A DNA stretch of 62,901 nucleotides, the filler included, from Hyphochytrium catenoides (Eukaryota > Protista > Hyphochytriomycota): the NCBI GenBank assembly GCA_900088475.1. It is 5 parts of 5 records of this genome, joined end to end, with 100 filler letters (N's around TTAATTAATTAA, not from the genome) between each part and the next. Parts side by side here need not be neighbours in the genome. Positions count along the whole stretch, not along the records: positions 14,101 to 32,301 come from FLMG01003288.1; 4 more parts are not named here. One strand, written 5' to 3'. Shown in pieces: positions 3,790 through 32,301 of the stretch (position 1 is its first letter; each line of letters begins with the position of its first letter). A program made the position numbers and the translations under genes. The notes below the pieces were generated by a model. It made no database searches, was not told the origin of the DNA, and saw only the letters and a program-made list of their open reading frames with translations.

Positions 3790-4279
3790 TCCCCCTTCTC
3801 TCTCTCTTCTCTTTCTCTCTCTTTTTCTTTCCTCTCTCTCTCTCTTGTTCCCTCTCCCTATAAACTGTCTTTAGCCCAAGGTCACGTGATGGTCGCGGTG
3901 CAACTAAACAATGGGCACTAACCCTTTTCATTATTCTCTAAAAGACCTGGTACTCTTGCTGCTTCTTTCCTTTTATAAGGCCTTGGACGGAGCGGGGCGT
4001 TCGTGCAGCCCCAAACCCAAGTGTAGCAGAGGGAACTGCGGATGGAAGACGGAGCCAGACGGACAGACAGAGGAACACAAATCAATGAGTACGTTACTCC
4101 TCGCTGAAGCCAGCAGATGGAAGGCTGGCCGCTCACACTTCATCATCATCACCTCCTCGATCGGACTCGTTTCCATCATCAACATTGTTTGGCGCTATGC
4201 ATCCCACTCCACATCAGAAGAGCCGGGAACTGATGAACATCATCAGTGAGCGCCGCCAGCTCACTATCTGGGTACTGCC

Positions 4280-7010
4280 TCATGGTGGCGACCACCAGGC
4301 GAGAAGTAATGCAAGCAGCTTCTTTGATTGAGGCGGTGAAGGAGCTCGACAAGGACACTAGCAGCCTGCTGGCGGTCAGCACTGATACTGCTCCTGCTTG
4401 CACCAACCATCCAGAATTTTTCTAGAGCGGCTGGCGGCAAACCTGGAATATATACGCGTCTTCTTCACAGAATGGTCCCTCGAGGACATCTACTCGTTCA
4501 GTGTTCTGGGCAAGACCGGAGGCGATCTTAAATGCAAGTTATCCCTGCTCAAGGGCCGGCAAAGGGATGCAGCTAGGGAGGCCTTAGACGCTTACCGAAG
4601 TCGCGGACTGGGATCTTCTAAAGTTAAGGACCGCTCGACTGCTCTCCAACCTCACAGCTTTGTAGGACGATTCCGATGTGACTATCATAAGCAGAAGGAA
4701 GCATCCTTCCTCTCTGAGAAGAAGAAGCAACAGCACTCGTTCGAGCTCAAGCACATCGATGTTGTCTTTGAGACCGGAGATTGACGATGCGTTTGCAGAA
4801 GACTGCAGGTTGTTCAAGGTGATCCTCGTCGTCCTTTATAATGACGTCCAAGGCCTACTCCCGAACAATTTGAAGGTGCTTGTTAGCATTGTCGTGAGAG
4901 CGATTTTTGTTGACTATGTGGAGGAAGGAAAACTCTTCTTGATATCCCGATGGCGAGAGGCAGGCGCCGCCTGGGCGCTTCTGGTTTCGTCGATCGTGAG
5001 TTGGACCTTGTTTTAGATGCTGTCAGGCATACGGTCTCCCGCCATATCATGAAGAAGGCGGCAGTCAGTGTGGACGATTTGTGGGCAGACATCACGTTAG
5101 ATAATGCGATGGCCTTCCTACCAGCTATTGTGCACAATATCTTATACGACAGGCAGAGACGGCTAGCATCGTTAGGAGAAGTTGGAGAGCAAGTCATTTC
5201 AGGTGGCAGATGGACTATTGGGACCTCATGCCAACGAAGAGCTTGGAGACACAGAGCTGATTGTGACTTTTATGGTCAACTTCCGGCTCGGGCTAATGGA
5301 ATCTGCAGGTCGTTCTCTAAGTGTAGCTCACGTCCCTCTTTGTATACGGTGGCTCCGGAAAGAGATTAGATCTTCATCCTGCCAGGGGAGCGTTGTTCTG
5401 ATGCCAGACATGGTTCCCGTGGACAAGCACTGCCAGTTGTTGACTGATACCAAGCATTATCTGATTAGTTCCTTTCCCTCGAACGAAGACTTTTCACGCG
5501 CTGCTCTGGCTCAGAGTATGGGAGAACCTCTAGTCAAGCTTATTTTTCAGGGACACGACGGTAGTCTAATGGGCAGGTCACTCCTTGAGCTCTTCACTCT
5601 CCTTTATGACGGAACTGCCAGCTCGGAGGAACGAAGTAGTGCTATGATGTGCAGGCTGAGTGATGGAAGGCTGTTGCAGCGGTGCCTGCAACTGGCATTC
5701 CGACATGGTGTGGAACAGGGCCTACGCTTTTCTAAGAAACCTACCAAACAAAAAAGAAGCGCGTTGTCTTAAAGAAGGAGGCAACGAGTCGAGGGCGGGA
5801 GAAAGCGTCCGGAGTTGTCAGCGAGCTGACCAACAACATGAAGCGACCCATAGTAGAGTCCATCCTTCAGCTTCTATTGGCGGGGGAATTGGCAGCCATG
5901 AACGACAAGTCATGGGACACTATCTGGCACAATTCTCTCCTTATCGCTGCCCTCTACAAAGTGCTACAGGAGCCTTATATCCCACCGTCCAGGGCGCCTG
6001 ACCAAGGGTTTTGCATAGAAAATGTCTTGGCCTTCCTAGCAGATACTTGCCTCCTTACAGATCTGATGCCGATAGAGCTCCTAACTCGAAGCCCTCTCCT
6101 ACAGGATATATGCCGACATGCTATCGAGAGTATGGATGGTGTGGGCATCACGATCATGACTCTCCTGGTCGCCAAGGAGCTTCGCCAGGTACCGCCGTCG
6201 TTAGACAGGCTAAAGGACCCCAGACGCGAAGGATGGATAGATGAGGAAAGGTTCGATCAGGTTGTCTTGGAAGCAGAGTTGGAACCAACGTACGTCGTGG
6301 ACTGTCTAAGGCATCAGAAAATCCTGCATCGATAACGGAGCAATCCTTTGCTCGATAGAGAAAGGAGAGAAGAGGACTTTGCGGTCGAAGTGGTTTGGGC
6401 CAGCGAGCCCTGTCCAGATGATCCATCGTATCGAACAAGCCATGAGAACGATAAGAAAAACTATCAAGAGTTCTTAGACAACGAGTGGAATCGTAAGTTC
6501 CGGAACTTCCTTCATCTGCTGTGGTTGCTGTTCACGGTTCGCGGGATGTCAGAGATAGTAACGGAGGAGGCTCATTGGAGTCTGGGAATGTCGTATGTCC
6601 TGCTCTATAGCCAAGAATCGAGCACTTCGACCATCCAAAACAAAGTGATAGCCATGGATTGGCTGCTGAAGATGCTTACCCATGCCTCCGTAACGCGACC
6701 AGCGGGGTTTAACAAGGAGGATTTGGATAGACTCTGTGTGCTGGACCGCGTCCTGCAGTTGAAAGCGCTATTGCAGATTCAGAAGGAGGAGGGTCTAGGT
6801 CGGAAGAAGAGAAAGGCAACTTCAAGGGGTAATGAAGTCTTGGACCGTCTAGTCCAACTGGTCAAGAGCTTACTTGCGGATGAAAAAGGTGTAACAAACA
6901 ACGTAGCAGCACGCCAGAAGAAAGAAGTCACGCTCTACATTCTAACGTCACTTCTCCAGTCATTGGTAGTTAGGTGCAAGTGCTGCCGCCCTTGGTGTCT
7001 CGCCTACTAA
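4280..7010 (+). pseudogene. Frameshifted, intronless pseudogene of a large alpha-helical protein
   Basis: Overlapping protein-like ORF pieces on one strand: 4398-4784, 4678-5016, 4950-5369, 5182-5772, 5838-6335, 6348-7010. The last two are in frame and separated by one TAA. Leu-rich helical composition, no microsatellite introns. Confidence 0.55.
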
Positions 7011-14100: not shown

Positions 14101-16150
14101 TCTTTCTCTTTCTTTCTCTCTCTCTTTCTTTCTCTCTCTCTCTCTCTCTCTCTCCCTCCTCCTCCTTTTGCCTATCGATCCGAGAGAAGACTCTAAGGGA
14201 CTTGTTGGTTTTTTGCAGGCCTTCTCTTTTCTCTATTCGGTTCGTTTCCTCTGCGCATTGCCCCGTTATATGCCATGGCGCAAGTCAACTCCTTCCTTCT
14301 ACAGTCAATAATGACTCTAACTTCAGAACACCTCTCTTCAGAACTACTACTATCTTCAGGAGCCAGATCATTGTGTTGCCCGGCGGCGGTGATCTATGCT
14401 GCATAATAATATCTCTGATGATGATGGGTGAGGACTAGAAGCATCCTTTCTACATCGCAACTCTTTCTCTGTCGTTACAAGTGTTATCGTCGTCCAGTGC
14501 CAGCCTTACTACTGCTATTAGATGCGCACCATAGAGACGATCGATAAGCACGAGCAAAAAAGGGCAATAAAACAGTAGTGAAGCACCTCTGTCATCTGAG
14601 AACTTTCAATGGCGTGAGGTGGCTTAGTTTAAGGGCATCATCTGGCAATGGCAGATCGCGAAGATGGGACAGTGAGAGAAGAGAACAGGGAAACAAAGAG
14701 AGAGCGTCATTAGCCTGACAAAGAGCATGAAGACAGAACAAAGAGAGAGAAAGAAGAAGTACACACAGAGGAGAGAGGGCACAACGCGGTCTAGTGTGAC
14801 GACGAACGGAAAAGACCGCGTATAAGTATATCCCTGGGTGAGAAAGAGAGAGACAGAAGAAGGAGAGAGAGAGAGAAAGAGAGATTCTTTTGGTTCCCTA
14901 CTACCGAAGAAGTGTCAGGATGCCTATACTTCTACCTGCAGAAGAACCAAAGTAGTGGGAAAGACAGATGCGATTCCCGACTTCCCGCTACTGTTACATA
15001 CTCCTTGTCCCTAAAAATATGCCACCAGACGCTCAGCTTCGAACATCAGAAATGCTCCCAGACCCAAAATTGCTCCCTCTTCGCAGTACTGCTTCCTCTT
15101 TGGCAATTCTTTATAAGAAAACTTTGAATGCATGTATAAAGGGGAAAAGGCTCATCAAAGTCCAATAAGGACGGCGGATGGCCAAGCAACGCGATGGCCG
15201 CTTCCACTATCTTGCGATATGAGAGAGACCGATCGAGAAGAGAATAGGAAAGGGGAGAGAGAGAGAGAGAGACAGAGTGAGAAGAGGAGATTAGAAAGGG
15301 AGAGAGAGAGGGAGAGAGAGAAAAAGAAAAAGAGAAGAGAAGAGGGCGACAACAAGAGAGAGAAAAGAAAAAGAGAAGAGAAGAGGGCGACAAAAAGAGA
15401 GAATAACAGAGAGACGGACAGACACACCAAGTAACTCATATAGGAACAAGAGGAGTGTCTTACTCCCATCTCCTTTCCTTTTGCCTTCCTTCAGATGACG
15501 ATGGCATGGTGCATTTCAGCGTTCAAAGAAGCAGAATAGAGCAAAGGACTCGAGAGAAAGAGAGAAGAGGTTAAGCTTCCTTTCGCCCTGAACAGGCAGT
15601 AGGAGTCCCTCTCCATTTGGCTTCTTTCCCACCACCTACCCGTGCATCGAACTCATAAAGTCTCTCCCGCCCCATCCTCTGCAAACCAGCAGGAAGTTGC
15701 TGAAGAGCCTAAAAAAGGTCCTACCTTTCTGCTGCAAGCGAGAACAAAGAAAATGAGCAGTCCGCCATTTGGCCTCTGGTTCTCTTTGTTCCTCTCTCTC
15801 TCTCTCTCTCTCTNNNNNNNNNNNNNNNNNNNNNNNNNNNNNNNNNNNNNNNNNTTTCTTTCTTTCTTTCTCTCTCTCTCTCTCGTCGTGATCCACCAAG
15901 TAATGAGGCGCAGTCATTGCGTTCTCTGGGTTGTCTATCATCATCAGCTTCTTGAGTATGGCAGGATAGAAATGAAGAGGGCATTCCTTGGACGATACAG
16001 AGTAGCGTTAATGTTCATTCTATATATAGAACTGTTCTCCTCTGAAGAAGAAGTAATAAGACTGGTCAAGAGAGACAGAGAGATGATGCAGTAGAGATGA
16101 TGGCACACATGGTATGAAGCGTACAAGAATAAAAGTACAAGGAGGGCTAT

Positions 16151-18424
16151 CTACTTCACTCTCTTCAGAAGAGCTGTGCTGCCGCCGGGCCCTGAGGAAG
16201 AGATATACAGCTCGTTTCCTTGACATTTGTAAGAGGCAGAGGAGCTTGTCATGAGCTCGTTTACCATCTCACTGAAGTCCTCTGTTTGAGGAGGAAAGCC
16301 TCCGCCCAGCGTGTAAGTGGCCACCGCTTGGAAGTCTGAGGCCTTTGGCTGGACAACAAGGGTGCCAGGAGGTGAGGAAGAGGAGAGCGTCCCTGAGGTC
16401 CCTCCTCCCAGAGAGATCTCTATTCTGTCGATCACGTCCAATGTCAGGGAAAGATGGAAGCTGTTTGCTCTGAGGTCGTAGCTTCCACTCGCGCTGATTG
16501 TCAGAGAAACCGTGCCAGACACCACGGAAGAAAGAACCTTCACCGCTCCTCCTTTCCCTAGTAGTTCTTCATACCGCTCAAGAAAAAACTCGTTGTCCAT
16601 CAGCCAGGAACCAGCAAGGCAGCCATCTACCTTCCCGCCCCCTCCTTCCCCGCCTCCTCCTCCTGAAGAGCTATCTGCACCACATTCTTCTTTCGATCTA
16701 GCTTCATACTGCACCCGAAAGGTGGTGACTATGGCCTCCAAGCTATAAGGCGTGGTAGTTACCAGGACATCAAACATCGCCACCGAGTCCACATCATTGC
16801 CACAGGGCGTCTCTATGACCAGACCCTCTACCGCCGTGACGTCCACCCAACTCTGCTCAGGTCGCCGGGCGTTCTTGAAAGAGACCAAGGTGAAAGGGTT
16901 CAGCAGCGGATGGAAGTGGTACTTCCCACCAGCTGGAAGCTTGAGAGTCTTCACCGTGAAAGCGTAGGGCGTGCATTCGATGAATAAACTTTGAGAGGAG
17001 GGAGAAAGTTCAATAGTGTCTTTCCCCGGCGGAGCAGGGAGAGGCACGGGCACCCCAGTCTTATCCCATATTTTCTTGTCATAATAGTCCCGGCCAAACT
17101 GATGGAATATCCAGGACATTCGAGGGTAGTCTGAGATGGCTTTGAGAATCTCTGGCGCCGTAGATGGACGCGGCATACTTCTTAGAAAGCCCACGACAGC
17201 CGCTTCTCCGCTTGGCCACAAGTTATGAAGCTCTTGGAAGAAGAGCGTTGTAGAGTACCGATTCTGTCTTGGGAGGGGTAGGGCAGGATTATACGCTGTA
17301 GAGTAACCAAACTCGACGTTGATCTCTGGGTAGACAACGCTGGAGAAGAAGGTAGCGCTGCCCTCTATCACCCACCAGTCCGAGTATTCCGCTGTGTTGT
17401 CGGTAGGATAGAGGTCATTGGCATACTGGAAGCAATGGAAAAGCTCATGTGCCATGTACTGGCGAAATAGCCTATGTGAACCTCCCTGGCCTGCCAGAGA
17501 CGAATAGAAGCTCTCCTGAGCTGTGACAAAGATCTGGACTCGACAAGCTTCAGAAGATGAGGAACCAGGATGGAACATAAAGGCATCGGCGACAGTATTG
17601 GGACCTGGAGAAGGGCCGTCCATCAGAACTATATAGATCTTAGGCATCGAGCCATAGCGTCCATATATTGGAGGGGCCGCCTGCAAGGCATGCGTCACTT
17701 CCTCGAGCAAGTAGCCGTAGAAAGAAGGCTCGCTCCAATTGTCAGCATAGCGAAAGAATCGGTCCATCCCTGCCTGGGGCGGCGCGGAGGAAGTGGATCC
17801 TGGAAAGATCTCCACGCAATTCAAGGGCTTCATGCCGCTGTTTGGCCACAACTGACTGCAGTCCATTCTATTTTGCGCCTCCGCTGGCGCACCAGCATCA
17901 TTACTTGCTCGTCCCACGATGCTTGTGGAGAAAGGTCCTGATTGCGTTACTTTGGCGAGTTGTTCTTCCTGAAAGAGGCTATCGCTGGACGAATGGCGTG
18001 AAGGAAAAGAGAGACCAGGAACTCCTCCTGTGTCCCACTCCAGCCCTCTCATCCGCCGTCGTCTCTGCGCACTGAGCGATGAGGAAGCCTTCTGCTCTTC
18101 AACTCCTACATAAGAAGGAGGAAGACAGATCCAAATAAATTCGTTCTGTCGCGTGCATATCTCTCCCTTGTAATGGCAGCTTGTCATGGGTTCATCCAGC
18201 CCCACATCACCATCAGAGGAGAAGCTCTTGCCTCCGCATTTGCTAGGTGGTAAATGCGGGAAGGGTGTAGGAGACGAGGAAGGGTCAACATCTAGTCCCT
18301 GAACAGGATGTCCTTGTTGGGAGCGGAGGTCTGCTATTGGATCGGCTGTTATTGTCTGGCTGCAGAGTGATAAAACCGAGAAGAGGCAGAAGACCGTGAG
18401 ACGAAGCTTATCCGACGGGCTCAT
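16151..18424 (-). CDS. Secreted zinc metallopeptidase-like protein (HEXXH...E) with N-terminal CBM1-like module
   Basis: Intronless ORF, first ATG at 18424. Signal-peptide-like MSPSDKLRLTVFCLFSVLSLCSQTITA. CBM1-like CGGKSF...C...GEICTRQNEFIWICLP. Polybasic RRRRMR. AHELFHCFQ followed by WWVIEGSATF. Gly linker, then C-terminal domain starting GCLAGSW. Confidence 0.8.
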   Translation of the reverse strand: MSPSDKLRLTVFCLFSVLSLCSQTITADPIADLRSQQGHPVQGLDVDPSSSPTPFPHLPPSKCGGKSFSSDGDVGLDEPMTSCHYKGEICTRQNEFIWICLPPSYVGVEEQKASSSLSAQRRRRMRGLEWDTGGVPGLSFPSRHSSSDSLFQEEQLAKVTQSGPFSTSIVGRASNDAGAPAEAQNRMDCSQLWPNSGMKPLNCVEIFPGSTSSAPPQAGMDRFFRYADNWSEPSFYGYLLEEVTHALQAAPPIYGRYGSMPKIYIVLMDGPSPGPNTVADAFMFHPGSSSSEACRVQIFVTAQESFYSSLAGQGGSHRLFRQYMAHELFHCFQYANDLYPTDNTAEYSDWWVIEGSATFFSSVVYPEINVEFGYSTAYNPALPLPRQNRYSTTLFFQELHNLWPSGEAAVVGFLRSMPRPSTAPEILKAISDYPRMSWIFHQFGRDYYDKKIWDKTGVPVPLPAPPGKDTIELSPSSQSLFIECTPYAFTVKTLKLPAGGKYHFHPLLNPFTLVSFKNARRPEQSWVDVTAVEGLVIETPCGNDVDSVAMFDVLVTTTPYSLEAIVTTFRVQYEARSKEECGADSSSGGGGGEGGGGKVDGCLAGSWLMDNEFFLERYEELLGKGGAVKVLSSVVSGTVSLTISASGSYDLRANSFHLSLTLDVIDRIEISLGGGTSGTLSSSSPPGTLVVQPKASDFQAVATYTLGGGFPPQTEDFSEMVNELMTSSSASYKCQGNELYISSSGPGGSTALLKRVK

Positions 18425-19181
18425 TATGCGAACACTTATATCAGTGTCATGGACCTCTACCCAGGAGCTCAATCAGAATGTAGCTTTCTGGTCACCGATG
18501 GCCAGGGTCTTTTGTAGTGGTGGACAAGGTAGAAAAGGAAAATTGACGAAGATAGCGCCAACGCTGAGAAGGAGCAGACACAGCTGAAGGGTAATCAGCC
18601 AGTCGTTGTGGGGCAAGGAATGGCGATTCTTTTGGCTCACTATGCACTTGAAGATCATTGCTTCTCAGCGTCTGCCATCATCTCCAAAGAGCGGGGCCGA
18701 GCCTTGGAAGAGCTTGCATATCTTTTTGTGGACATACAGACACGTTTCATTGGCTGGAGAGAGATTTGAAAGGGGGACTAAGATGTCTTTCATTGGCTAG
18801 ATGTTTCTTGAAGTTAAACTTTCATCCAATGACCTGTAAGGATTTGTGACAAATTGGCGGTCGGACTAAAGATCTAGAACTTACACTGGCCAATGGTAGG
18901 CTTGTCGACAGCCCTGAAGAGGAAACCCATAGTTCTGATTGGTTAGGGGCCGCTAACCCCCCCAGTCTCTTCACGGACTAAGCAGTCCAGCAAAAGAATG
19001 GTGAGTACTACACCCACATCACCCACCGGTTGAGAAGTTACTCACCTCGAAAGCCAATGCCCTTGCTTTTATAGACAACAATATCTTTGTTCCTCCTATC
19101 CAAGCTCTTGAATGATGTCTAGTAGATAATAATGGATATTGTGATGATGTGTTGAAGGTCTGGAATGTCCAAGCTGCAGTG

Positions 19182-19350
19182 GCTCTTGGAGCTCCTCTTG
19201 CAAGCCCATGGATGCATGCCATAACATGTCCAAGCTCTGCAATGGGTGCCCAACAAGCAAGCTCTTGGATGCCCCTCTTGCAGGCCCTATGTGTGCCTGT
19301 GTTATACAATATATACTAGCTAAGCTCTTGGATGTCCCTCCTGCAAGCCC
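19182..19350. repeat. Three imperfect copies of a 26-27-bp repeat (GCTCTTGGATGYCCCTCYTGCARGCCC-like) with unrelated spacers
   Basis: Copies at about 19182, 19261 and 19324. Confidence 0.7.
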
Positions 19351-19381
19351 ATACCAATGTTGTATGACGTCCCTGCAGCAT

Positions 19382-19585
19382 ATGGCGTCACTGCAGCAAA
19401 AGCAGAGTGACTACTGATGCTAGCTTGGATGTGACCAAGAAGAAAGAGCTGAGGCTGACTTTCGTCTCTCGGCTGGCCTCCATGGCGTCACTGCTGCAGA
19501 AGCAGAGTGGCTACCGATACTACCTTGGACGTGACCAGAGAAAGAGGCTGAGCGAGGCTGACTTTCGTCTCTCAGCTGGCCTCCA
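19382..19585. repeat. Tandem duplication of about 100 bp
   Basis: ATGGCGTCACTGC...GAGGCTGACTTTCGTCTCTC(G/A)GCTGGCCTCC at 19382-19481 and 19482-19585. Confidence 0.85.
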
Positions 19586-20298
19586 TTGCTATACCACTGA
19601 CCTTGCTCTTTCTTGTTTATTATTGATGGTTGGACGAGAGACAATAATACATGGTATTCATCATCCTCATCATCACCAATCCGCTACTGATGTCACCTGC
19701 TGGAAGGAAGCGGAAGGGTCACTGACGTTGCTCTTGATATTGATGCAAATGGACCGGGATATTTGTCGATCGCCTCTCTCACTCTCTCTCAATTTAAAGC
19801 GTCTACCGTCGTGGGAAGTGTCCTTGCTGCTAAATAGAAACAATAGCCTTCCAGGGCTTGTGGTTTGAACATCCAGGTGGCGAATTTGAGCAGAGAAGAA
19901 CTCTTCTCTGCCTCCAGTAGCGCCTGGAACCTCCAGGTGGCGAATGTGACGTTCATGTGAGCAGAGAAGACGCGCGAGAAAAGAGGAGAGAATGGTTTGC
20001 ATAGACAAGTTTCCCTTCTAGGGACTATGAGTTTCCTTCTGCCCACCCAGATGACGTGACAGAGCATGCAGATGAAGATAAGCCTCTGACTGGGGGAATC
20101 AAACTGGCGCTTGACATCACTAGCGTGGGAGTTCTCCTTCGCCCCCTGGCTGGGTCAAGCGGGAGGAGGCTCTTGGCCCCCAGAGAGTAGGTCGTCATAG
20201 CATTGGGTTGTGTGTGCGCTAAGCGTAGTTTGAGAGCCTCCTGCCTGCTTGGGCCCTACCATTCTAGCCACCGTGTCTTCCGTCTGAACGGGTTGATA

Positions 20299-20970
20299 TT
20301 ATGTCGGGTAGCCTTCTTGGTAAGCATCAGAGTGCCAGCGTCCCAAGAACTTGATAGTTAGGTCGCCCGCCTGACCGTTCATTAGTGTTCTTAGTGCAGT
20401 AGTGCCTCCTACCCTCAGGGAGTGTGTCGAGTACCGTTCGGGTGGGTGTCCGCAGGCTGCTGCCGCTTGCTTCACCAACTTGGCCACGTCTTTCGCAGTA
20501 ACAGCGATCCCCGGGCGGTGGTCCTCTTGCTAACTAACTCCCGCTCGCCTGGACGATCCCAGGCCGATTGCAGCGCCTTCAGCAGACATCCTGCCTTGAA
20601 AGGGCATAGAAGAGAGTGTCCCGACCTCCGTAAGCGACGATGAGACCCTCTCCCAATCTGGTCATTTTTGCCGCCGCGTAAATCGATAGAGACTGCCACC
20701 GTCCTGGCGCTATCTCTGCATGTTCTGCCGGCGCAGCCTCAAAGCCGTAGGTCGTTGATTCTAAGAACGCAAGAGTGGGTCTCTGCCCCCATGAGGCAAT
20801 ACTCCGACCTTCTGAGGAGGAAGGAGTAGGCCAAAACAGTGAGGCTCCATAAAAGTTGGTGGTGTGGTGTGTACCAAGAAATAAAGTCCGAGAGGCACAG
20901 CAGGATTGGCACTGTCACGGGCTGCTTCTGGGCCAGGGAGCGGATGTGCGGCTAAGGCCTTGTCAAAAAA
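20299..20970 (-). mobile_element. Degraded tyrosine recombinase of a DIRS/Ngaro-type (YR) element
   Basis: Across frameshifts: KQPVTVPILL...LWSLTVLAYSFLLRRSEYC (catalytic R), IDLRGGKNDQIGRG (K), LCPFKA, YSTHSLRVGGTTAL (HxxR), IKFLGRWHSDAY (W). Confidence 0.85.
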
Positions 20971-21299
20971 GCTGACTGCTTCTGCCGCGCTGCATAGATG
21001 CAGTCGGCTGTGCCTCCCCTCGCCGTTGCCGCTGTGTCTAGGTTCCGGGCAGGCGGCAGAGCCTGAGGCTGACCGAGCAAACCTGAGACTGAGGCGCGAG
21101 GTCAGCCTCATCCTCTAACCGAGCCAGGACAACCTAATATCCCCCAGATATTTAACCGACTCTCACCTCTCTCTGTCGCTCTCTCTCTCTCCCACCACTC
21201 TGTCTCTCCTGCACGTCTCTCTTGGTCCAATCCATGTGAGATAGATCAAGTACCGAGAGAGAGACCAATAGTTCTAACAACAAGCGGAACATGGAACAG

Positions 21300-22260
21300 A
21301 AAAGAGAGAAGAAAAGAAGAGAAAGGAGAGATCAAAGAAGAAGCGTCCTCTACTAGCTGCACAGTTCCGGTCTTGTACCGTTGCCGGCATTGAAGTACGG
21401 TTAACGACGTAGTAGAGTGGCCAGGTCCTGGTCAATGCCCAAGGTAATGAGAAGAAAGACGACCTGTTCGCGTGACAGAGATATGGATGTCGGTTGTTAG
21501 CTTATCAGTTCAGCCAGTAACCTGCCTCAACCCTCCACTCTCTCTACCTCTCTCTCTTTCTCTCTTCCCTTTTGCTCCCCATCGGCCCTTCTCTTCAAAA
21601 GCTGGGCTTCAGAGGAGAGAGAAAGAGGTCTGTGTGTCCCTCTCTCTTTCGTCTTTTCCTTCCCGCGAGTACCGCGGTAGGTAAGGATAACATTGCAGAG
21701 CTTGGGGAAGAACGACGACAGGAAGTCTCTTCCCCTGCTGGCTCCTCTTCGGGGTTCATTGTCCCTATGTCCTCATTCTTTGACGAGGAGGAGAGAAACA
21801 ACCTTCTCAGCTTGCGGCTCGTCAACCTAGAGCCCAGACCTGAAGGCTCTTCCCTTGGATACGGCAGACTTTCTTCCCCGAGGAGACTCTTTCGACACGT
21901 GAAGAGTCCTCCCTCCCTAAACACTGAAGAAAGAGTAAGGAACGGAGTCGAGGAAGTCTCTCTATTATCAGCCTTTCTTCTCTCTCACCTGGAAGACTGG
22001 AGGGTAGTGGAGGCAGGCACTCGCTTCCACCGTACTAAGAGAGAGAGACAGAAGTCTCTTCTATCCTGTCTCTCTCTCTCTCTTCAGGCCCAACAACCGC
22101 AAATCTCTCTTCCAGAAGCGTCTTATGGGGTGAGGCATGGCAGCGCTGGTTTGGAAGCAGACCAGGAGGAGAGAGGGAGAACCAATTGTTTTGGCAGTGT
22201 CTTGTTCCCTTCAGAGATCCTGCAGGCAGCGATCGTCGTCTCTCCAGAAGACGAGAGAGA

Positions 22261-22316
<56 letters not shown>

Positions 22317-22430
22317 TCTCTGAAATCAGGAAAGGCGGCGCTTCTATCTATATAATATCTCAGCGGAAATGGGGAGACTGGCACTAATTTCATGTGAGCA
22401 CGAGAGCAGGATGTGCATTTTCCTCTCTCC
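21300..22430 (+). pseudogene. Partial paralog of the downstream acidic-protein gene (upstream-region copy joined to an internal coding copy)
   Basis: 21300-21560 aligns by eye to 24640-24880. 21600-22430 aligns to 27480-28250 (peptides IVPMSSF..EE..NLL.LRLVNLEP and NGVEEVSL.SAFL..HLED occur in both). Frameshifts present. Confidence 0.8.
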
Positions 22431-23482
22431 CAGTAACGAGGAGCCTTTCCTACCTTGCTCCGCCATGGCCTTTCTTTCCTCGCTGGCGGAGAAAAATGGC
22501 TTAATAGATGAAGAGGTCCGACACTTGCGGTGCCTCTCTCCAGCTGCTGCGCTTCAGGAGAGAGAGAGCGGGGCCTGAATGTCCCTCTCTTTTTCGTCTC
22601 CTTCTCTTGCCGCGAATACCGGAAAGACCAGGGATAACCTTGCAGAGCTTGAGGAAGAAACGACAGGAAGTCTCTTCCCCTGCTGGCTCCTCCTCGGGGT
22701 TCATTATCCCTTGTCCTCAATTTCAACTGGGGAGGGGAGAAACAACCTTCTCAGCGTGCAGCCAGCAAGGGAAGAGACTTCCTGTCGTTCTTCTTCTCAA
22801 GCTCTGCAAGGTTATCCCTGGTCATTCCGGTATTCGTGGCAAGGGAAGGAAACGAACATGATGAGAGATACAGACAGGCCTGTTCTCTCTCCTGAAGCGC
22901 AGCAGCTGAAGAGAGGCACCTCAAGTGCCGGACTTCTGCATCCCTCTATAAAGCCATTATTCTCCGCCAGCGAGCAAAAAGAGGCCGTGGCCGAGTAAGG
23001 TAGGAAGGTTCCTCGTTACCAGAGAGAGGAAAATGCACATCCTCCTGCTCTCGTGCTCACATGAACTTAGTGCCAGTCTCCCCATTTCCGCTGAGATATA
23101 GAGATAGAAGCGCCGCCTCTGCTGGTTCCAGACAGACACGAGAGAGAGAGAGAGAAGATGAAGATGATCTCTCTCCTCTTCTACGACGGTCGCCGCCTGC
23201 AGGTTCTCTGAAAGGAACAGGCCACTGCCAAGATAATTCATTCTCCCTCTCTCATGTCCTGCTTAGAATCATCGCGGCCATTCCTCACCCCATAAGACGC
23301 TTTTGGATGAAGAAGTTTGCGGTTGTTGGGCGTGGACAGAGAGAGAGAGACAGGGTAGGAAAGACTTCTCTCTCTCTCTCTCTCTTAGTACGATGGAAGC
23401 GAGTGCCTGATCCACTATTCCGAAGTCTTCCAGGTGGGTGGGAAGAAAGGCTGATAAGAGAGAGACTTCCTCGGCTCGTTCC
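21940..23482. repeat. Long imperfect inverted repeat (fold-back), arms about 21940-22688 and 22763-23482
   Basis: Example pairs: CAGCGGAAATGGGGAGACTGGCACTAA (22361) with TTAGTGCCAGTCTCCCCATTTCCGCTG (23067); GGGATAACCTTGCAGAGCTTGAG (22631) with CTCAAGCTCTGCAAGGTTATCCC (22796); CACCTGGAAGACT (21986) with AGTCTTCCAGGTG (23424). Confidence 0.92.
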
Positions 23483-25036
23483 TGTCTCTTTCTTCAAGGT
23501 TATGCATCATAGGTCACCATCGAGCACACCATAGTTTGGCTGCTGCTGAAGAAGGAAGAAGGATAGGTGCTCCACTATTATAGTCCATACAATCATGGGT
23601 CGAGGAGGAATGTCTTGGAGTTAGAGTCATCACTGACCACCGTAGAAGAAAGGAAGCGAGTTGCCCCATGAGATNNNNNNNNNNNNNNNNNNNNNNNAGA
23701 GAGAGGGAGAGAGAGGGAGAGAGAGAGAGAGAGAGAAAGAGGCATGTCTGCTTACTACTAGCTGCAAGAGCCGAAACCGTAGTAGTTCATTCCTGTTCTA
23801 AAATCTAATGACTATTTTATGATTGTTTGATTGCCTTTTATTTGGAGAGACAAGAAAATCATTAATTTTGTTTGTGGCTCTTGTTGGGAACAGGCGTTAC
23901 ATGAAAAGGGGCACTTCCGTAATCCCTGTGGCGTAGGTTTAGGCTCCTGTAGCCCTAGAACTGTGTGTACGGCGGCTGAGGGGGAATACGTGTAGGTATC
24001 AGATTGTTGTAACAGTAGTGGCCGGTGCTCCAGGGGCTGGCAGTGAAGGAGCCGGAAGAAACTTCCTGGTGTGGAGGTAACAGCACTCTCTCTCTCTCTT
24101 TCCTCTCTCTCCTGGGTGTTCTCTTCTTTCCCTCTCTTTCTCTCATTCTTTCTCTCTCGGTTTCTTTTTTTCTTTCTTTCTTTCTCTCTAAGGCCTTATA
24201 TTTTCCTGTCTCTCATTCTCTCGCTATGTCTGTTTCTCTTATTCTCTCTCTGTCTCTTCCTCCCTCCCTTTCTTTATCTCTCTCTCTCTCTCTCTCTTCC
24301 GCTCGGTCTTTCTCTCTCTCATACATACACACGCTCTGCTCTCTTTCTGTCACTTAGCGACTCACTCTGTCTCACCTCCCTCGGCATTCTTCTCTTCTCT
24401 ACCGTTGCTAATCCACAAAGCTATTACCTCATCATCTCACCAATCAGTAAGGCTTTTCCTCCCCGTCGCGTCTTCTGCTCTCTCTCCCTTCTTCTCCTAC
24501 TGCTCCACTCCCTGTTCTCTCCTTACCAAAGACTATGGGACGATCATTGAGGGAGAAAGAGAGGATAGAGATGCCAGAGAAGAGGGAGACAGATAACGTA
24601 CTGAGAGAGAGACTGGCAGCAACAGAGTGAAGCGTGGAGGGTAAAGAAGAAAGAGAGAAGAGAGAAAGGCTAGGAGACAAAACGTCCCAACTAGCCGTGA
24701 CTCCGGTCTCATACGGTTGCAGACAACTACGACTAAGGAAGTAGAGTGGGCAGGCTTGAGCAATGTCCTAGAAAATGAGAAGAAAGACGATCTGCCCGCG
24801 TGGCAGAGATGCGGATGTCGGTTGCAAACGTGTCAGCTGGGCTGTAAACTGCCTCAGCCCTTCACTCTCTCTCCTTCTCTTTCTCTCTCTCTACCTCCGT
24901 TTTTCTCTCTCTCTCTCTCTCTCTTTCCTTCTCTGTTGCTCCCTCTCTTCCCTTTTCTCTCCTTTTTCTTTTCTCTCTTTCTCTCTTCCTTTCTTTTTCC
25001 CTCCTCTCGTCCTCCCTTGCTGTCTCTCTCTTTGTC

Positions 25037-25075
<39 letters not shown>

Positions 25076-25538
25076 AAAAGGAGCCTGATAAGAAGTAAAC
25101 AAACGAATATACCTCACCTCCTCTACATGCTCTTCCTCGTCCTTGCAACGTCCGTTACGCTGTTCCTTCCTAGCAATTGAGAGTCAAAGCACCACCGCAC
25201 CGCCGCGCCAATGCCGAAGGCTCCAATCTCTTGAGGAAAACTATCTGACACTCTGCAGTTTTCTCTGCATAGCCCACAACCTTTTTCAAGCCATTGCGTT
25301 CGGGAGAGGCCAACGCGCAAGAGGACGGAGAGAGAGCGAAAGGGGAAACTGCAGGGTTGGTTATCAGAGACGGAAAGGGAAAAGGAGAGAAGTGCGGGTA
25401 GGAGAGAGAAAGAAGCAGAAGAAGAAGGCCCAAGGAAGAAGAGACAAGGAGAGAGAGAGAGTTTGAGTAGTGGAGAGCCTTAGGTCTTGGACCGGGAGGG
25501 TGGAGCGCCGAAGTGGAGAGAGGGAAGGAAGCGGAGGC

Positions 25539-28500
25539 ATGGGAGGGTGGAGAGAGAGTCTGAAGGGGAGAGAGGGATGGATGGTGAGGAAGTTCCTCAG
25601 GGAGAGCGTGCTGCCGGCGGTGGGAACTGCAGGAGGAGCAGTCCTCATCACTGGAGCCTCTCTCCCTGTCGCGCCTGTCGTGCTCGCCGCTCTGGCTACC
25701 ACGGCCGTGGGCTTTCATGGCTTTGTGGAGAGGCAATGGCAGGAGACAGAGGAGAAAAAAGAAGAAGAAAGGAGGCAGGCGAGTGAGCCTAGGTAAGCTA
25801 TAGCGGACAGTAGAGGCCTAGAGATAGAGAAAGAGAGAGAGAGCGAGCGAGCGAGAAAGAGAGAGAGAGAGAGAGACCTGCAAGACAGTAAGATGGAGAA
25901 CGAAAGCTGTAAGCAGTATCTATTGATCAGCTTTGTAGTTTTTAGTACTCACTCTGTCTCTTTGACCCTCCATCTTCTCTCTCCAAGGACGAACCTCTTT
26001 CGCACTGAGGAGCCGGCAGGACAGGAGAGAGAGAGAAAAGAGGTCGTTACGTCGAGCACAACCACGGAGGAGGAGAGAGAGGAAAGGGGAGAGAGAGAGG
26101 GGACGGTATCGTCCTCCCTCCTATCTCCTCCTCTTGTGCTCCCTTTTCCAGATGATGCTCCACCACCTTCCTCTAATGCCGTTGGAGAGAGCGAGAACGT
26201 GGAAGAAGAGAGGGAAGAGACCGTACCTCAGGAGGAGCTCCAGCCACTCGTCGCCTTATCTTCCCTTGGTGAGAGGGAGGAGAGAAATTACCAAGAAGAA
26301 GGGGAAGAAATCCAGGCGGATCTGTCTCTCCCTCTCTCTCTGCTTGCAACCGCGCAGCCCCAAGCACCTGAGGTCGTAGGAGAGGAGAGTGCAGCAAATC
26401 TTTCTACCTCTGTCACTGTTCTAACTGTGGACGTTGCCGAAGCGAGACAAGAGGAAGAGGTAGAGCCTCTCTTTCTCTCTTTGTTGGACCATCTCTCTCT
26501 TGCTCCCTCTGCTATCGCTGACCCAATGGTGGAGGAGCAAAATGGCTTAGAAGTGGAACAGAATGTCGGAGAGGAGCCTCTGCTTCTCTTGTCTCCTCTT
26601 AGGGAGCAGAGCGAGGGCGTTGGGGAGGAGAGAGAAGAGCAAGTTTTCCCTGTCTCTCTTTCTTCTTTCAACCTCAGCGATGACGGACAGCGGACAGGAG
26701 AGACGGAGGAGAAAGGGTTTCTGCCTTCTTCGGCGAGCATCCGTTCTTCTCTCGGCGACGAGCAGGGAGAGAGAGAGAGTATTGTTCCCCTGGCGGCTAA
26801 TCTGATGGATGAGAGAAAGACACAAGACTCTTCTCGTGAGGAACAAGGGATTGGGGAGGACGAAGAAGAGAAGGAGGAAGAAGCCGCCCACCGCCTCAAC
26901 TCTCTTGCTCTGGAGCAGCTGGGGATTGAAGAAGAGAGAGAGAAAGACAGCAGCCAAGGGCTGGGAGAGCAACAAGAAGATCAGCTGGTTTCTCTCTCTC
27001 TTTCTGTCACGCCCATCGCGGAAGAACAAACTCCTGAAGAAGAACAGCAGCCTCAACGTCCTTCATCGGTGGTCCTTCCTCTCGCTCTGGAGGACCATGT
27101 GCAGGGAGAGAGAGAGAGGAACCTTTCAGAGCCGCTGAATGGTCTGCTCAAGCCTCTCGAGGAGGAAGAATGCTTTTCTCTGTCTCCAAGCTCTCTCTCT
27201 CTCGCGTCATCGCCTAGGAATGCAGACGAGCGCCGCCCGACTCCGAGACTTGAGAAGGAAGAAGAGGTCGCTTCTATCTCTTCCTCTCTCGCTGAGCAAA
27301 AGATGGAGGGAGGAGAGGAGTGGGAAACAGGCAGCTTCAGCTCTTTGGGAGAGAGGCAAGAGCCAAGCTTCTCTCTCTCTCCTGGTACAGAGACCTTCAG
27401 CGGTGAGACACCGAGTACAGGCGAGGAACCTTGCTTGCCTTACTCGGCTGCAGAAGTCCAGTTGCTGTGCTTCCCTTCTTCTGCAGCGCTTCAGGAGAGA
27501 GAGAATGAGGCCTGTATGTCCCTCTCTCGTTCGTCTCTTTCTCTTGCCACCAGTACCCGGATTTCCAGGGATAAGCTGGCAGAGCATCAGGACGAAGGAC
27601 AGCAAGTCTCTTCCCTTGCTGGCTCCTCTCCTCCGGGGTACATCGTCCCTATGTCTTCATTCTTGAATGATGAGGAGGGAGACAACCTCCTGAACTTGCG
27701 GCTGGTCAACCTGGAGCCCGGAGAAGAAGGCCGTCTCCCTGAACACGGCTCCCTGAGAGAGAGAGAAGACTCTTGCGAGCGCGTTAAGAGCCTTCCCTTC
27801 GTTAGAACGGAAGAGAGAGACTGGAATGGAGTCGAGGAGGTCTCCTTGTCAGCCTTTCTTCCCGCTCACCTGGAAGACTTCCGGGTAGCGGATCGGGCAC
27901 TCGCCTCGATCGTGCTAAGAGAGAAAGAGGAGTCTCTTCTGTCCTCTTTTCCTCTTCCCTCGCGCCCAACAACCGTAAACCGTCTTCCAGAAGCGTCTGA
28001 CATGGTGAGGACGGATGGCGGCGATGCTTGGGAGGCAGGACAGAAGAGAGAGAGAAGACGCTGTGTTGCTATCACGTTTCCTTCAGAGATAACACCAGAA
28101 GAGGAGAGAGATCATCTTCTCTCTCTCTCTCTCGTCTCTCTCGAGCCAGGAGAGACGGCGCTTCAAACTCGGTCTGTCAGTTGCGATGGGGAGACTGGCA
28201 GCACATCCATGGGAAAACGTGAGCAGGAGGTGCATTTTCCTCGGTCCAAGAAAGTCTCTCCTCTTCTCTCTCCCGCACTAGCAGATCGCGTGCCATGGGT
28301 GACTCTAGAAGACTTCCTGGGAGTTGACCAGGGAGAGTGCTTCTCTCTCTTGAAGGAGACAGAGACACAGTTATCTGCTGTGTCTCTCACACCTGATGCT
28401 GCCTTGCACTCTTGTCAGAGAGAAATGCGAGAGCCACCTGCTGGCTCTCTTTCCTCTCAGCAGGTAGCCGTCGGTCCACCTCGCTCTGGGGCGTACGACG

Positions 28501-29464
28501 AAGAGAGAGAGAAACTCGCTGTTCTCTCTCTTGTGTCGCTCGAACCGGCGTCTGAAGGTTGTCTCCGCAACTCTTATTCTTCCTACGGAAGAGACACCGC
28601 TGAAGAGAGAGAGAGAGGACCGCAGTCTTCTTCTTCTGAAAGGACAAAAGAAGGGAAGACAGCGACAACTGGCACTTCTTTCTCCTTTTCTCTCGCCTCG
28701 TCCTCACCCTTTGCACAGACTCCGAGGACATCATTGTCGAGCGTAAGCAGCGCCGCTGCTGCTGAAGAGAGAGGAGAAGCAACAGAGAGTGTTGAGCTGC
28801 AGAACGGTGAGGCTTTCTCTGCAGGTAAAAGTGTTCGCTCCCTTCCTTGTCACTACTTTTCTCTTCTCTCTCTCTCTTTTTCTCTCTCTCGCGCGCGCTC
28901 TCTCAGCCTCGCACACAATTTCTTGCACACACTCTCTATCTCTGATGTTCCTCTCGCTGGTCTTCTCTTTGACTGTCTGTTATTTCTCTCACCTTCCAAT
29001 GCCTTGCACAGAAGTTGACAGGGCCCAAGATCTGCATGGAAGAGAAGAGCTTTGCCTTCCTCCCATGGAACACGAGGTAGCCAGTCTCTGTCGTCTTTCC
29101 TTCTTTGTTCATCTGCTAATTCCTTGTTGAAGGCTCTCTCCTCCTCTCCAGAGCAAGACGGCGACGAAGACCGGACATTGACGTCCTTGAACTCTTTCCC
29201 TGGCTCCTCAGAAAAAGGAGATGGGGGAGACAGGTCAGTCCGTATTTTGGCTCTACTCTTCCGCTTGCTTTCTCTCTCTCATCTTTATCTCTGTCTTCTC
29301 TCCCTTACTCCTGTTTTTTTTCAGCTCTTCAGCGCCTCCAGACAAGGCGCTGCTAGATATAACGAGCAATGTTGAAGAAGCAGGAGAGTTACGGCTGTCA
29401 AAGTCAGACAAAGGTCAGGGCTGCCTCGCTGTCTCTCTCTCTCTCTCTCTATCTTCGAACGTGG

Positions 29465-29502
<38 letters not shown>

Positions 29503-31601
29503 TCTCACCTGTGTATACACCGAGAGAGTGTATGTTGTCTCTAAGATCCTTTATCTGGCCAGGTCTGGATGCATCCGCGGGCGCAGGACAAGAAACAGAA
29601 CCCGGAACTTCTGCAGCAAATCCTCAACGGCAAGGCTTAGTGCTTTTCCCTTCAGGTACGTTCCTGGCCGCAAGAGTCCAACGTGACGTTCAACCTCTCT
29701 CTCTCTCTCTCCTCTCTCTTTGAGAATCTCTTTTGTCGTCAAATCTCTCTCCTCCCATGTCCTCAGTCTCGCTGGTTTGTTTTCTAACTCTCAGTGATCT
29801 TTTTCTTCGCTCACGACCACCATGCAAAGAAGAGGACGGAGCCCAAGATCTGGACGGAAGACTTCCCGGAAGAGAAGAGCTATGCCTTCCTCCCGGGGAA
29901 CACAAGGTTAGCCAATCTCTCTCGTCCTTTCTTCTTTCTTCCCTGTCTAAGTTCTTGTTGAAGGCTCTCTCCTCTCCACATCAGGGAGAAGTAGAAGACG
30001 GAACGGAAGCCCAGACATTGGCGTCCTTGGAGTCTTTCTCTACCTCAACAAAAAAGGATGATGGCGACAGGTCAGTCCGTACTTTGGCTCTCTCTTCCTT
30101 TTTGATTGCTCTTTCTCGTCTTTATTTCTGTCTTCCACTCGCCTTTCGTGGCAATGATCTCTCTCTCTCTCTGTCTCTCTCCTGCCAGATGTTGACGTCA
30201 GTAGTTCTGCTGCTTCTTCATTCTTGCTCGTCTTCTCTCACACGCTCCTGCTTTCAGCTCTTTGCCTAATCAAGAGAAGGCGCTGCTGACGAGCGATGAC
30301 AAAAAGGCAGAAGACCTATTGCCATCAACGTCGGACAAAGGTCAGCGCTGCCTTTCTCTCTCTCTCTCTCTCTCTCTTCCTCTCTCTCGCTCTTTCTGTC
30401 TCTCACAACAGCCAGACCCACATAGTCTCTCTCTCTCTCGCTCTTCTTGTTGCTCGTTCATTCTCTTTCTCTTCGCTCTGGTATCTGAGGGGAGGAGATA
30501 AGGAGAAGAGAAAGAGTCTTATCTGCTTCTGCGGCATCTCTTCTTCCTTCTTCTGGGTCCCTTCGCTGTTGGCGACATCTTCGGGTCTCTGCTTCTCTGC
30601 AAAAGAAGAGAGAGAGACTGACGGAAGGAGAGAGAGAGATTGAGCCGGAAAAGAAGGATAAGAGACTGGTAAACTCAGAGACGAAGAAGAGAGAGAGAGG
30701 ATATAAAGAGACAGGCAGAGAAAGGGAGGGAGAGAGAGAAAAATAGAACGTCAGGTTGGACTGCATGCAGGGGAGAGCCCACGAGGAGGAAGAGAATGTG
30801 TCCAGAAGTAGAGGAAGACTCTTCCTTCTTTAAGTCTTAGTCCCTCAGCCACCAGATGGAAGCTTTCTGCCTTTCTCCCCTTCTCTTCGCTTCTCATTTC
30901 TTCTTCTTTTCGAGTCGGTGGATTCTCCTCTCTCGTCCTCCTTCCGGCTACGCTGATCCTTTCTCTGCCTCTCAACAACATGTTATCCATCCTTTCTTCC
31001 TCCAGACACCTACTGTCTGCTCTTCCCGTACATCTTTCTCTCTTTCTCTCTCTCTCTCATGAGATGTTCTGATTCCTATCTCTCTCCTTGTATGGGGAAC
31101 CTTCCCTACAGAGGTCTGGAGCCAAGCAAGAGAGACGTCCCCAAGGAGGACACTACTCAGAAGAGGCGTACCTCTCCTATCTCCTTCCTCCGCAGAGGAC
31201 AATCTAAATCCCCCCAAAAAGTCAGTGTACCTTGGCCTGTAAACGAAAGAGAGAGAGACGAAGAGAGAGAGAAAGAAAGAGGGGAGAAGAGAGAGAGGGA
31301 GTGTGTCGAGAGAGAGACATTGAGGAGAAGAGACAAAGTAAGCCAGACCGGGAAGACGCAAAATCTACGAGTCTCACCTTTCTACTCTCTCTCTCTTCTC
31401 TTTCGGCAGCAGCTACTCGGTAGCCAAGAAAGAGAAGAAGAAAGAAGAGAAAGTTGGCCTCTGGGGAAACTTACTGGACGCATTCCTGCCCCGGTCCTCC
31501 TCCTCCACCTCCTTGGCAGCCAAGTCCAGAAAGGCCTCAGTCTCCCCTTCTCCCGCTTCTTCTCTCCCTCATCCTCAACATCGACGCTAGCAGCTATATA
31601 G
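25539..31601 (+). CDS. Large Glu/Ser-rich, probably disordered protein with an N-terminal hydrophobic segment; multi-exon; start and end uncertain
   Basis: Exon to 25792 (VLPAVGTAGGAVLITGASLPVAPVVLAALATTAVGF) splices in frame to a long exon at 25988-28824. Short GT-AG exons follow at about 29011-29076, 29132-29232, 29324-29413, 29563-29655, 29830-29906, 29963-30070 and 30257-30340. Possible last exons at about 31112-31220 and 31410-31601. Confidence 0.6.
29011..30340 (+). repeat. Intragenic tandem duplication of a three-exon cassette
   Basis: AQDLHGREELCLPPMEHE / ALSSSPEQ..TLTSLNSF..GD / DKALL..SDK repeats as AQDLDG..GREELCLPPGEHK / ALSSPHQ..TLASLESF..GD / EKALL..SDK. Shared splice contexts TTGTTGAAG| and |GTCAGTCCGTA. 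Confidence 0.85.
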
Positions 31602-31650
31602 ACTGTATAATGCACTTCTGTTCATGTGTAACACCTCCTTCAGCTCCTGC

Positions 31651-31701
<51 letters not shown>

Positions 31702-32301
31702 TTTCTCTTGCACCTCTTGAGACTTCGAGTTAGGAAAGAAGGCCTAAGAGAGACACAGCAGGACACAGACCTGCGAGGAAAGAAAGAAAAATGAAAGGAT
31801 TGCAAGAGAGGGAGAGAGATCTACAGGAGACGAAAGAGTGAGGAACGAAAGGAGCTCAGTAACCATGAACAAAACACATAGAGAAGAGAGAATAAAGGAG
31901 GCAGAGAGAGAGAAAATCATTAGCAATCCAGTCTTCGCCCCGTTCATGGTCTGGCATATCTCTCCTCAGACTGACAGTAGAAAAAACCCTTGTCGTCTTC
32001 TCTTAGCTCACGCGAGAGGCATAGATCCGAGAAAGAGGAGAGAGAGAGTGAGAGAAGAGAGAGAGAAAGAAAAGAGAGTCCTTAAGCAGAGGGATGTCAG
32101 AAGAGGCAAGCCACTTGTACATTTGATCCATACATTGATTCTTACTACTCCCGATAGGAATGGAAGTACGTGCTTCTCTCTCTCTTTTTCTCTCTCTCTC
32201 TTGTCCTTCTGTGGGGCCCCATAGGTGCGAGCACGGACTGGCCGAGAAAGAGGAAGGGCAAGAGTCACACTGATTGGGAAGAGAGAGAGAGAGAGAGAGA
32301 G

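Follow-up and report, generated by a model that had tools for sequence, protein, structure and literature searches.

The DNA analysed (the window) is a 62,901-nt stretch made of five joined parts of the genome of Hyphochytrium catenoides, and at positions 21238-23496 it contains a rearranged partial copy of a gene for an acidic protein that ends in a palindrome of about 1.57 kb with a 71-nt spacer. Several inverted rearrangements, the palindrome among them, occur in a small set of paralogues that is prone to rearrangement and located on scaffold C3877, to which this region belongs, and on a sister contig, C4317. As judged from sequence comparisons, the palindrome is probably a pseudogene fragment that underwent neutral fold-back duplication, a decaying rearrangement scar.

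The gene from which these sequences derive is represented on the same scaffold by a long open reading frame (25893-29018, plus strand) of 1041 codons, encoding an acidic, repetitive orphan protein and hereafter called the neighbour. Its length greatly exceeds chance expectation (simulated maximum, 412 codons), and its codon-position composition and coding log-likelihood are like those of real genes of the same genome. No Pfam match was obtained for this ORF or for the ORF remaining in the left copy described below, a word-based homology search with residues 400-1000 of the long ORF found no homologue, an ESM Atlas search with it gave no usable match, and a search for SRS/SAG domains was also negative. 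The acidic-protein gene is fast-evolving. No Rfam family matched at gathering thresholds across the piece; a low-scoring match to the eukaryotic SSU model, on the last contig alone, is probably mitochondrial rRNA.

A unit of about 0.8 kb within the long ORF (27459-28253, plus strand) is homologous to two direct copies and to both arms of the palindrome. The first direct copy, unit A (21588-22436, plus strand), corresponds to 27470-28253 with 69.7% identity by BLAST, or 78% in aligned columns, and with 46% identity at the protein level. Unit B (22522-22762, plus strand) repeats the beginning of the unit as a second, partial direct copy, 77.6% identical to 27459-27702 and 82% identical to 21590-21818 by BLAST; it is colinear with positions 3601-3886 of the C4317 locus (L012), and both the loop and the innermost portion of the left arm come from it. 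Upstream of unit A, and linked to it via a CT-rich tract, lies V' (21238-21577, plus strand), a copy of a non-coding stretch, V (24586-24907, plus strand), situated 986 nt 5' of the start codon (ATG) of the long ORF, with a CT-rich low-complexity tract following it. V' and V are 71% identical over 346 columns by BLAST, and 79.7% identical in 311 aligned columns of a global alignment (K2P 0.24); these are the only two copies of this sequence across the genome. Thus, the preliminary description of this locus was correct in placing a copy of the region upstream of the acidic-protein gene at its start, in recognising next to it copied internal coding sequence of that gene (a partial copy, at 21588-22762), and in noting a partial repeat of the copied unit in front of the fold-back. 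The copied portion comprises 27459-28253 of the 3126-nt ORF together with V, with the approximately 2.56 kb that separate V from the unit absent, and its homology to a coding gene is truncated in the manner of a pseudogene fragment. In the neighbour, a polypyrimidine tract and CAG are found just 5' of the unit. An origin of the junction between V' and the unit by retro-copying was not adopted, as the supposed intron does not interrupt the frame of 1041 codons. Retention of the upstream region as a promoter is not indicated by the data either, since V' is as diverged as the remainder (K2P 0.24, versus 0.26-0.30 elsewhere) and its original lies 986 nt from the ATG.

Self-BLAST of the piece revealed a reverse-complement match of 21925-23496 to itself (79.9% identity over 1638 columns, E=0). 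No inverted self-match of at least 100 nt was found in 51 kb of other loci of the same genome. The left arm (21925-22688, 764 nt) is made up of a 3' portion of unit A and a 5' portion of unit B, and includes a (CT)n microsatellite at approximately 22262-22320. The loop (22689-22759, 71 nt) is a continuation of unit B without inverted partner, and plus-strand homology to the neighbour and to the C4317 copy extends through it to 22762. The right arm (22760-23496, 737 nt) is an inverted copy of the left arm, and its minus strand represents a frame-broken copy of the gene fragment. These dimensions agree well with the palindrome of about 1.5 kb, with arms of about 730 bp and a loop of about 75 bp, that had initially been described. 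Watson-Crick pairs account for 632 of the 720 aligned columns (87.8%) in the arm alignment, with 61 positions gapped, and identity is uniform along the arms. As RNA, the 1500 nt from 21961 to 23460 are predicted to fold into a single long imperfect hairpin (MFE of -1129 kcal/mol), in which five uninterrupted Watson-Crick stretches measure 21-33 bp; counting G:U pairs raises their number to eight. In its capacity to form an extended intramolecular duplex, the palindrome is comparable to inverted repeats of the hairpin-RNA (hpRNA) type.

The palindrome stems from a short-read Platanus assembly of a heterozygous diploid (PMC5795050) in which uncollapsed haplotype-like sequence is present and at least one scaffold join nearby is doubtful. 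The arms could be separate paralogues or haplotype variants that the assembler mistakenly fused, head to head, where the loop now lies. We nevertheless regard this as very unlikely, because the palindrome lies inside a single contig free of gaps, the right arm is found at no other place in the genome, and an inverted remnant at the equivalent position of C4317 independently indicates a genuine fold-back in the lineage. Moreover, the two arms are 12% or more diverged, and no exact match between them is longer than 33 bases, so that a k-mer graph would have had no reason to fold back. A collapsed-repeat artefact was rejected on similar grounds, with no N inside the palindrome and a longest exact inverted match between the arms of 33 nt; the preliminary description had likewise held misassembly to be unlikely because the arms are diverged.

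The relationship between palindrome and long ORF as neighbours is less secure. They belong to different contigs (c2 and c3, respectively), separated by an assembly gap at 23675-23697 that lies 179 nt outside the palindrome, on the side toward the acidic-protein gene. On C4317, the homologue of the sequence that starts at 23698 follows the reverse complement of the sequence that starts at 14101, and nothing resembling 23497-23674, a stretch which is unique in the genome, stands before it. As C4317 joins the far end of the scaffold at 23698, the adjacency and the relative orientation of the palindrome and the long ORF are putative. The palindrome is real, but its adjacency to the gene depends on a join across a gap that C4317 does not support. 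The conflict with the sister contig in order or orientation of contigs within C3877 is in itself a warning.

Comparisons among the copies confirm that the arms are closer to each other (85-89% identity) than to the neighbour (74-80%). The order of divergence is (neighbour,(C4317 copy,(left arm,right arm))), the corresponding K2P distances being about 0.30, 0.21-0.23 and 0.12-0.17. Hence the arms are homologous to the long ORF, as had been claimed, but the neighbour is the most distant known copy and not the direct parent; the nearest relative of the arms is the copy on C4317. That contig contains no long ORF, an inverted remnant of 102 nt (L012 3886-3987), and a palindrome of its own (L012 4198-4584 and 4720-5080) which is independent and derives from another part of the gene. 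Fold-back rearrangement is therefore recurrent in the acidic-gene family. A genome search with the palindrome retrieved only C3877 itself, C4317 and a single microsatellite match. Foldback (FB-type) transposons resemble the palindrome in their long inverted arms and short spacer, but they are multi-copy, dispersed elements, whereas the palindrome is confined to two related loci and derived from a host gene; this assignment was rejected.

The palindrome lacks coding and pairing constraint. Differences between unit A and the long ORF are distributed almost evenly over the three codon positions (57/51/60), with 9 of 20 indels being multiples of three. The pattern is equally flat in the other comparisons (28/28/28, 32/44/49 and 26/26/23), only about one third of the indels in the copy comparisons are divisible by three, and codon-position constraint is absent in every copy; the right arm, in addition, has frame breaks. 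We consider it extremely improbable that the two copies are convergent, tail-to-tail coding paralogues of the acidic-protein gene that both still function. The left copy retains an open frame of 271 codons (21572-22387), whose codon score (0.016 per codon) is faintly coding-like, but this frame begins with TTG and has neither a conserved ATG nor one near its start. Matches of the right arm to the acidic protein in tblastn are short and split between frames -1 and -3, its ORFs do not exceed 157 codons, and neither a codon-position bias of substitutions nor an excess of in-frame indels is apparent. With regard to pairing, selection to maintain it would favour G:U-tolerant changes, and no G:U excess is detected (24 G:U versus 21 A:C mismatches, binomial p=0.77), although the power of this comparison is modest with only 45 transitions (against 43 transversions). 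The mismatches of the C4317 palindrome (10 G:U, 5 A:C) likewise show no significant bias. Neither the near-perfect arms nor the G:U-tolerant changes expected of pairing maintained by selection are seen.

Because signals of constraint are absent from the arms and the copies, we infer neutral decay. Region 21238-23496 would then be a defunct copy of part of the acidic-protein gene, in which V' became joined to the internal unit of about 0.8 kb and the unit subsequently restarted. A later inverted duplication would have yielded the palindrome and its spacer, probably when replication or repair switched template or was primed from a folded-back strand, and the arms would since have drifted neutrally, accumulating the observed distances and many indels. 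The proposed origin by inverted duplication is in this respect upheld, for a partial copy of the acidic ORF that carries a copy of the upstream stretch. Fold-back segmental duplications and palindromic pseudogene fragments are known to arise by replication template switching or fold-back priming. Like them, the locus has a spacer that is short and asymmetric, its two arms are more closely related to each other than to any other copy, it lies in a cluster with other tandem and inverted duplications, and it shows neutral decay. Nothing essential sets it apart, the unusual feature being the second, independent palindrome from the same gene at the sister locus. Alternatively, two independent palindromes in one small gene family could reflect repeated selection for hairpins.

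A rival reading is a functional hairpin-RNA (endo-siRNA) locus, in which a transcript initiated in V', upstream of it, or in an adjacent dispersed repeat would read through both arms, and the resulting siRNAs, loaded into Argonaute, would lower expression of the acidic-gene family through the long ORF, the C4317 copy or both. The machinery for such processing is encoded. The genome contains an Argonaute gene (an 834-aa ORF with all AGO domains, a Piwi score of 371 bits and 47% identity to oomycete AGO1) and, on C4108, a Dicer-like gene with dsrm/Dicer_dimer, DEAD/ResIII and two RNase III domains. An RdRP was not found in a genome search, but hairpins do not require one. A transcript spanning the palindrome is accordingly predicted to be diced. 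The runs of paired bases of at least 21 bp noted above also speak for this reading. Arms derived from gene fragments are typical of Drosophila hpRNAs and young plant MIRNAs (PMC10317233), and the locus resembles hpRNA loci in that part of a protein-coding gene has given rise to a long inverted repeat, with a predicted extended duplex, in a genome with Dicer and Argonaute. In Phytophthora, inverted repeats are the most productive sources of small RNAs per Mb, and one of them, pin-IR2758, a 714-nt inverted repeat, gives rise to heterogeneous 21-nt siRNAs (PMC3804510). Phytophthora species are the nearest relatives that have been studied. Their loci share with the palindrome a stramenopile 'pseudofungus' lineage, a similar arm length and a predicted RdRP-independent route to dsRNA, but they are defined by sequenced small RNAs, and the palindrome by sequence alone.

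Several observations speak against such a function, and we consider it unlikely. Known hpRNAs have near-perfect arms and siRNAs fully complementary to their target, whereas the arms described here are 12-17% diverged, with many bulges and indels, no G:U excess and about as many transitions as transversions, and the conservation of V' does not exceed that of neutral sequence. Little complementarity to the putative target is apparent. Among the 2992 non-simple 21-mers compared, 6 (0.2%) match the neighbour ORF exactly and 32 with one mismatch; several of the exact matches are CT-rich, as is the longest non-simple word in common (24 nt). Near-perfect matches within the long ORF are confined to 28112-28135 and 27486-27504. 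More 21-mers, 36 in all, match the C4317 copy exactly, and this, like the second palindrome on that contig, counts in favour of a hairpin-RNA function. The status of the long ORF as neighbour hangs on the gap-spanning scaffold join. We thus see no sequence sign of a maintained silencer of the adjacent gene. If the palindrome is a fold-back scar, any transcript of it would still form a long imperfect duplex and be cut by the Dicer-like enzyme, but this would be incidental.

As it stands, the locus is mainly a well-documented case of fold-back rearrangement recurring in a fast-evolving orphan gene cluster. RNAi is not mentioned in PMC5795050, and the presence of Argonaute and a Dicer-like gene makes a small-RNA experiment worthwhile. 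The palindrome could be a working hairpin-RNA gene of a hyphochytrid, in which case the independent second palindrome on C4317 would mean that the orphan acidic family repeatedly gives rise to RNAi triggers of its own, but we hold this to be improbable. Were it true, the locus would provide a locally encoded gene-plus-silencer pair in a lineage for which no description of RNAi is known. If the hairpin-RNA locus were active, the known range of gene-derived endo-siRNA loci would reach beyond oomycetes to hyphochytrids, and the locus would offer a test case for RNAi in this lineage.

The palindrome lies in scaffold C3877 (18,201 bp, present in its entirety at positions 14101-32301), a eukaryotic sequence with abundant (CT)n/(GA)n tracts in an assembly of 61 Mb and 4759 contigs; the published Hyphochytrium catenoides assembly comprises 4758 scaffolds and the mitochondrial genome, built with Platanus from short reads of a diploid organism with a SNP frequency of about 2.75% (PMC5795050). 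C3877 is made up of three contigs, namely c1 (14101-15813), c2 (15855-23674) and c3 (23698-32301). Comparison of C3877 with its own reverse complement yielded an inverted self-match at 21925-23496 (79.9% over 1638 columns, E=0), so that the imperfect palindrome of the preliminary description is real: a left arm (21925-22688) and a right arm (22760-23496) surround a loop of 71 nt (22689-22759). Watson-Crick pairs occupy 632 of 720 aligned columns, with 61 gapped positions, and identity is roughly uniform along the arms, with a minimum near the (CT)n tract at 22262-22320. The fold check proposed earlier gave, for 21961-23460, a single long imperfect hairpin of -1129 kcal/mol. It is very improbable that the palindrome itself was misassembled, as it lies within a gap-free contig and the longest exact inverted match between its arms is 33 nt, which makes a collapsed-repeat artefact unlikely. 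No inverted self-match of at least 100 nt was found in 51 kb of other loci of the same genome, a small control.

The internal region of a 1041-codon ORF (25893-29018) has been partially copied in direct orientation, and the left arm belongs to this copy. The ORF is far longer than expected by chance (maximum of 412 codons in 2000 simulations), has a coding log-likelihood of +0.08 per codon in frame and negative values out of frame, and resembles the Argonaute, Dicer-like and 773-aa genes of this genome in codon-position composition and coding log-likelihood. Searches for a Pfam domain, a word-search homologue and an Atlas look-alike all returned nothing, and the predicted product is an orphan, acidic protein, probably disordered. 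Its counterpart on the sister contig C4317 (locus L012) is fragmented, without any ORF above 250 codons.

In the copy, unit A (21588-22436) matches 27470-28253, and the unit then starts over as unit B (22522-22762, matching 27459-27702), bearing out the partial repeat described previously. The copied upstream non-coding stretch is likewise present: V' (21238-21577), which precedes unit A, matches V (24586-24907). The K2P distance between them is 0.24, so that V' was duplicated at one time with the unit and has since diverged at the same pace as the remainder. The upstream region is thus present as a copy, but a retained promoter is not indicated: V' is conserved no better than the other copied parts, and 986 nt lie between the end of V and the ATG of the long ORF. 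Directly before the duplicated unit, at 27470-27486, the long ORF carries a polypyrimidine tract followed by CAG, resembling a 3' splice site, and the V'-unit junction sits in the equivalent CT-rich stretch of the copy. A dispersed repeat family at 20032-21170 has at least 40 copies on many contigs (74-90% identity); the reduction of its shorter copies to the two termini suggests a mobile element of the non-autonomous type. As it stops 68 nt ahead of V', this repeat could be a source of transcription into the copy and palindrome.

Other features of the scaffold include about 100-nt tandem copies (n=2, 85-88% identity) in unique surroundings at 19382-19589, and an old tandem duplication just downstream of the long ORF (29002-29492 and 29820-30404, 70-75% identity) which is common to C4317 (L012 5328-5780 and 6203-6670). 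A single-copy ORF of 773 aa occupies 16151-18472 on the minus strand. Its product has a hydrophobic stretch at the N-terminus and an HELFH (HExxH) motif, and weakly resembles the zinc-peptidase-like Pfam families DUF6055/DUF5700. The sole relative in the databases is a protein from an Anaerolineales MAG (26% identity), and the gene may therefore be of bacterial origin.

Distances in two alignable segments give the order (neighbour,(C4317 copy,(left arm,right arm))), with K2P values of about 0.26-0.33 to the neighbouring long ORF, 0.21-0.28 between the arms and the C4317 copy, and 0.12-0.17 between the arms. The arms are indeed closer to each other than to the neighbour, as described previously, and this branching order implies that the inverted duplication struck an already old partial copy, and not the neighbour directly. 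On C4317, L012 3886-3987 is an inverted remnant of 102 nt, 89% identical to 2948-3049 in reverse complement; its first 30 nt can be aligned to the outer extremity of the right arm of C3877. The contig also has a separate palindrome (L012 4198-4584 / 4720-5080; arms of about 361-387 nt, 90.6% paired, 135-nt spacer) derived from another part of the gene, 28251-28617. By this comparison, fold-back rearrangement is recurrent in this small acidic-protein family, and the large palindrome may be older than the separation of C3877 from C4317, with different trimming afterwards.

The gap at 23675-23697, outside the palindrome, separates it from the long ORF, and continuity across it was checked against C4317. 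There, L012 1-2113 corresponds to 14103-16198 in reverse complement (95% over aligned columns). A (GA)n tract follows and leads directly into sequence homologous to 23698 and beyond (GCATGTCTGC..., then 23890-24519); farther along, L012 4646-8866 matches 28176-32294 at 90%. C4317 thus places the left ends of c1 and c3 against each other. Both of these ends (14101-14160 and 23698-23740) stop within one (GA)n/(CT)n tract that is uninterrupted in C4317 (L012 2050-2150), and nothing similar to 23497-23674, a sequence unique in the genome, occurs on that contig. Two explanations would fit: an inversion of c1 and c2 in this haplotype or paralogue that broke within the (GA)n tract, or the joining of c3 to the wrong end of c1 and c2. 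Homology between C3877 and C4317 extends to both ends of scaffold C3877, with single-copy sequence beyond, so that the pair looks like an uncollapsed haplotig. Given the C4317 junction, a co-regulated hairpin lying beside the gene in the same orientation is unproven; under the alternative contig order the palindrome would lie about 9.5 kb from the ORF, on the opposite strand.

Substitutions are flat over codon positions in all comparisons (57/51/60, 28/28/28, 32/44/49 and 26/26/23), only about one third of indels are multiples of three, and protein identity (46%) is that expected without constraint at 70-78% nucleotide identity. The right arm is split among several reading frames, and two intact convergent genes, excluded by these breaks, are scarcely credible. 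Judged by these patterns, the copies are pseudogene fragments. Selection on a hairpin, whichever strand is transcribed, is expected to favour G:U over A:C mismatches. The arms show no such excess (24 G:U vs 21 A:C, p=0.77), contrary to what G:U-preserving change would have produced, nor is the ratio in the C4317 palindrome significant (10 vs 5); transitions and transversions in the arms number 45 and 43. At the modest power of this test, there is no sign of pairing maintenance in the arms.

The genome encodes the Dicer and Argonaute components whose confirmation had been called for: an Argonaute with full domain set in a single ORF (C2026:6901-7800, L010), nearest to oomycete AGO1 (47% identity), and a Dicer-like gene (C4108, ~209-217 kb, L018) that combines dsRBD/Dicer-dimerisation and helicase domains with two RNase III domains. 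RNAi is not treated in the genome paper (PMC5795050). No RdRP (PF05183) was detected in the genome, with control genomes likewise giving no response. Unbroken Watson-Crick pairing over 21-33 bp occurs five times in the duplex, and the count rises to eight with G:U pairs; together with the Dicer-like gene, these runs suggest that its RNA would be diced if transcribed. Among 2992 non-simple 21-mers from both palindrome strands, 6 have a perfect match in the long ORF, 32 a match with a single mismatch and 69 a match with two; the longest non-simple shared word is a CT-rich 24 nt, and 36 exact 21-mers are common to the palindrome and the C4317 copy. A functional hairpin-RNA locus has its prerequisites in genome and structure, and precedents elsewhere: inverted repeats, one of 714 nt, are the most productive small-RNA sources in Phytophthora (PMC3804510), and hpRNAs of other organisms do originate from their own targets (PMC10317233). 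Such a locus is nevertheless unlikely here, each sequence-level test able to favour it having come out neutral. We consider it fairly probable that a partial duplicate of the acidic-protein gene arose, later suffered a fold-back inverted duplication, and is decaying neutrally. The palindrome would then be one among several fold-back scars in a cluster of paralogues prone to rearrangement, and small RNAs, should it produce any, would be incidental.
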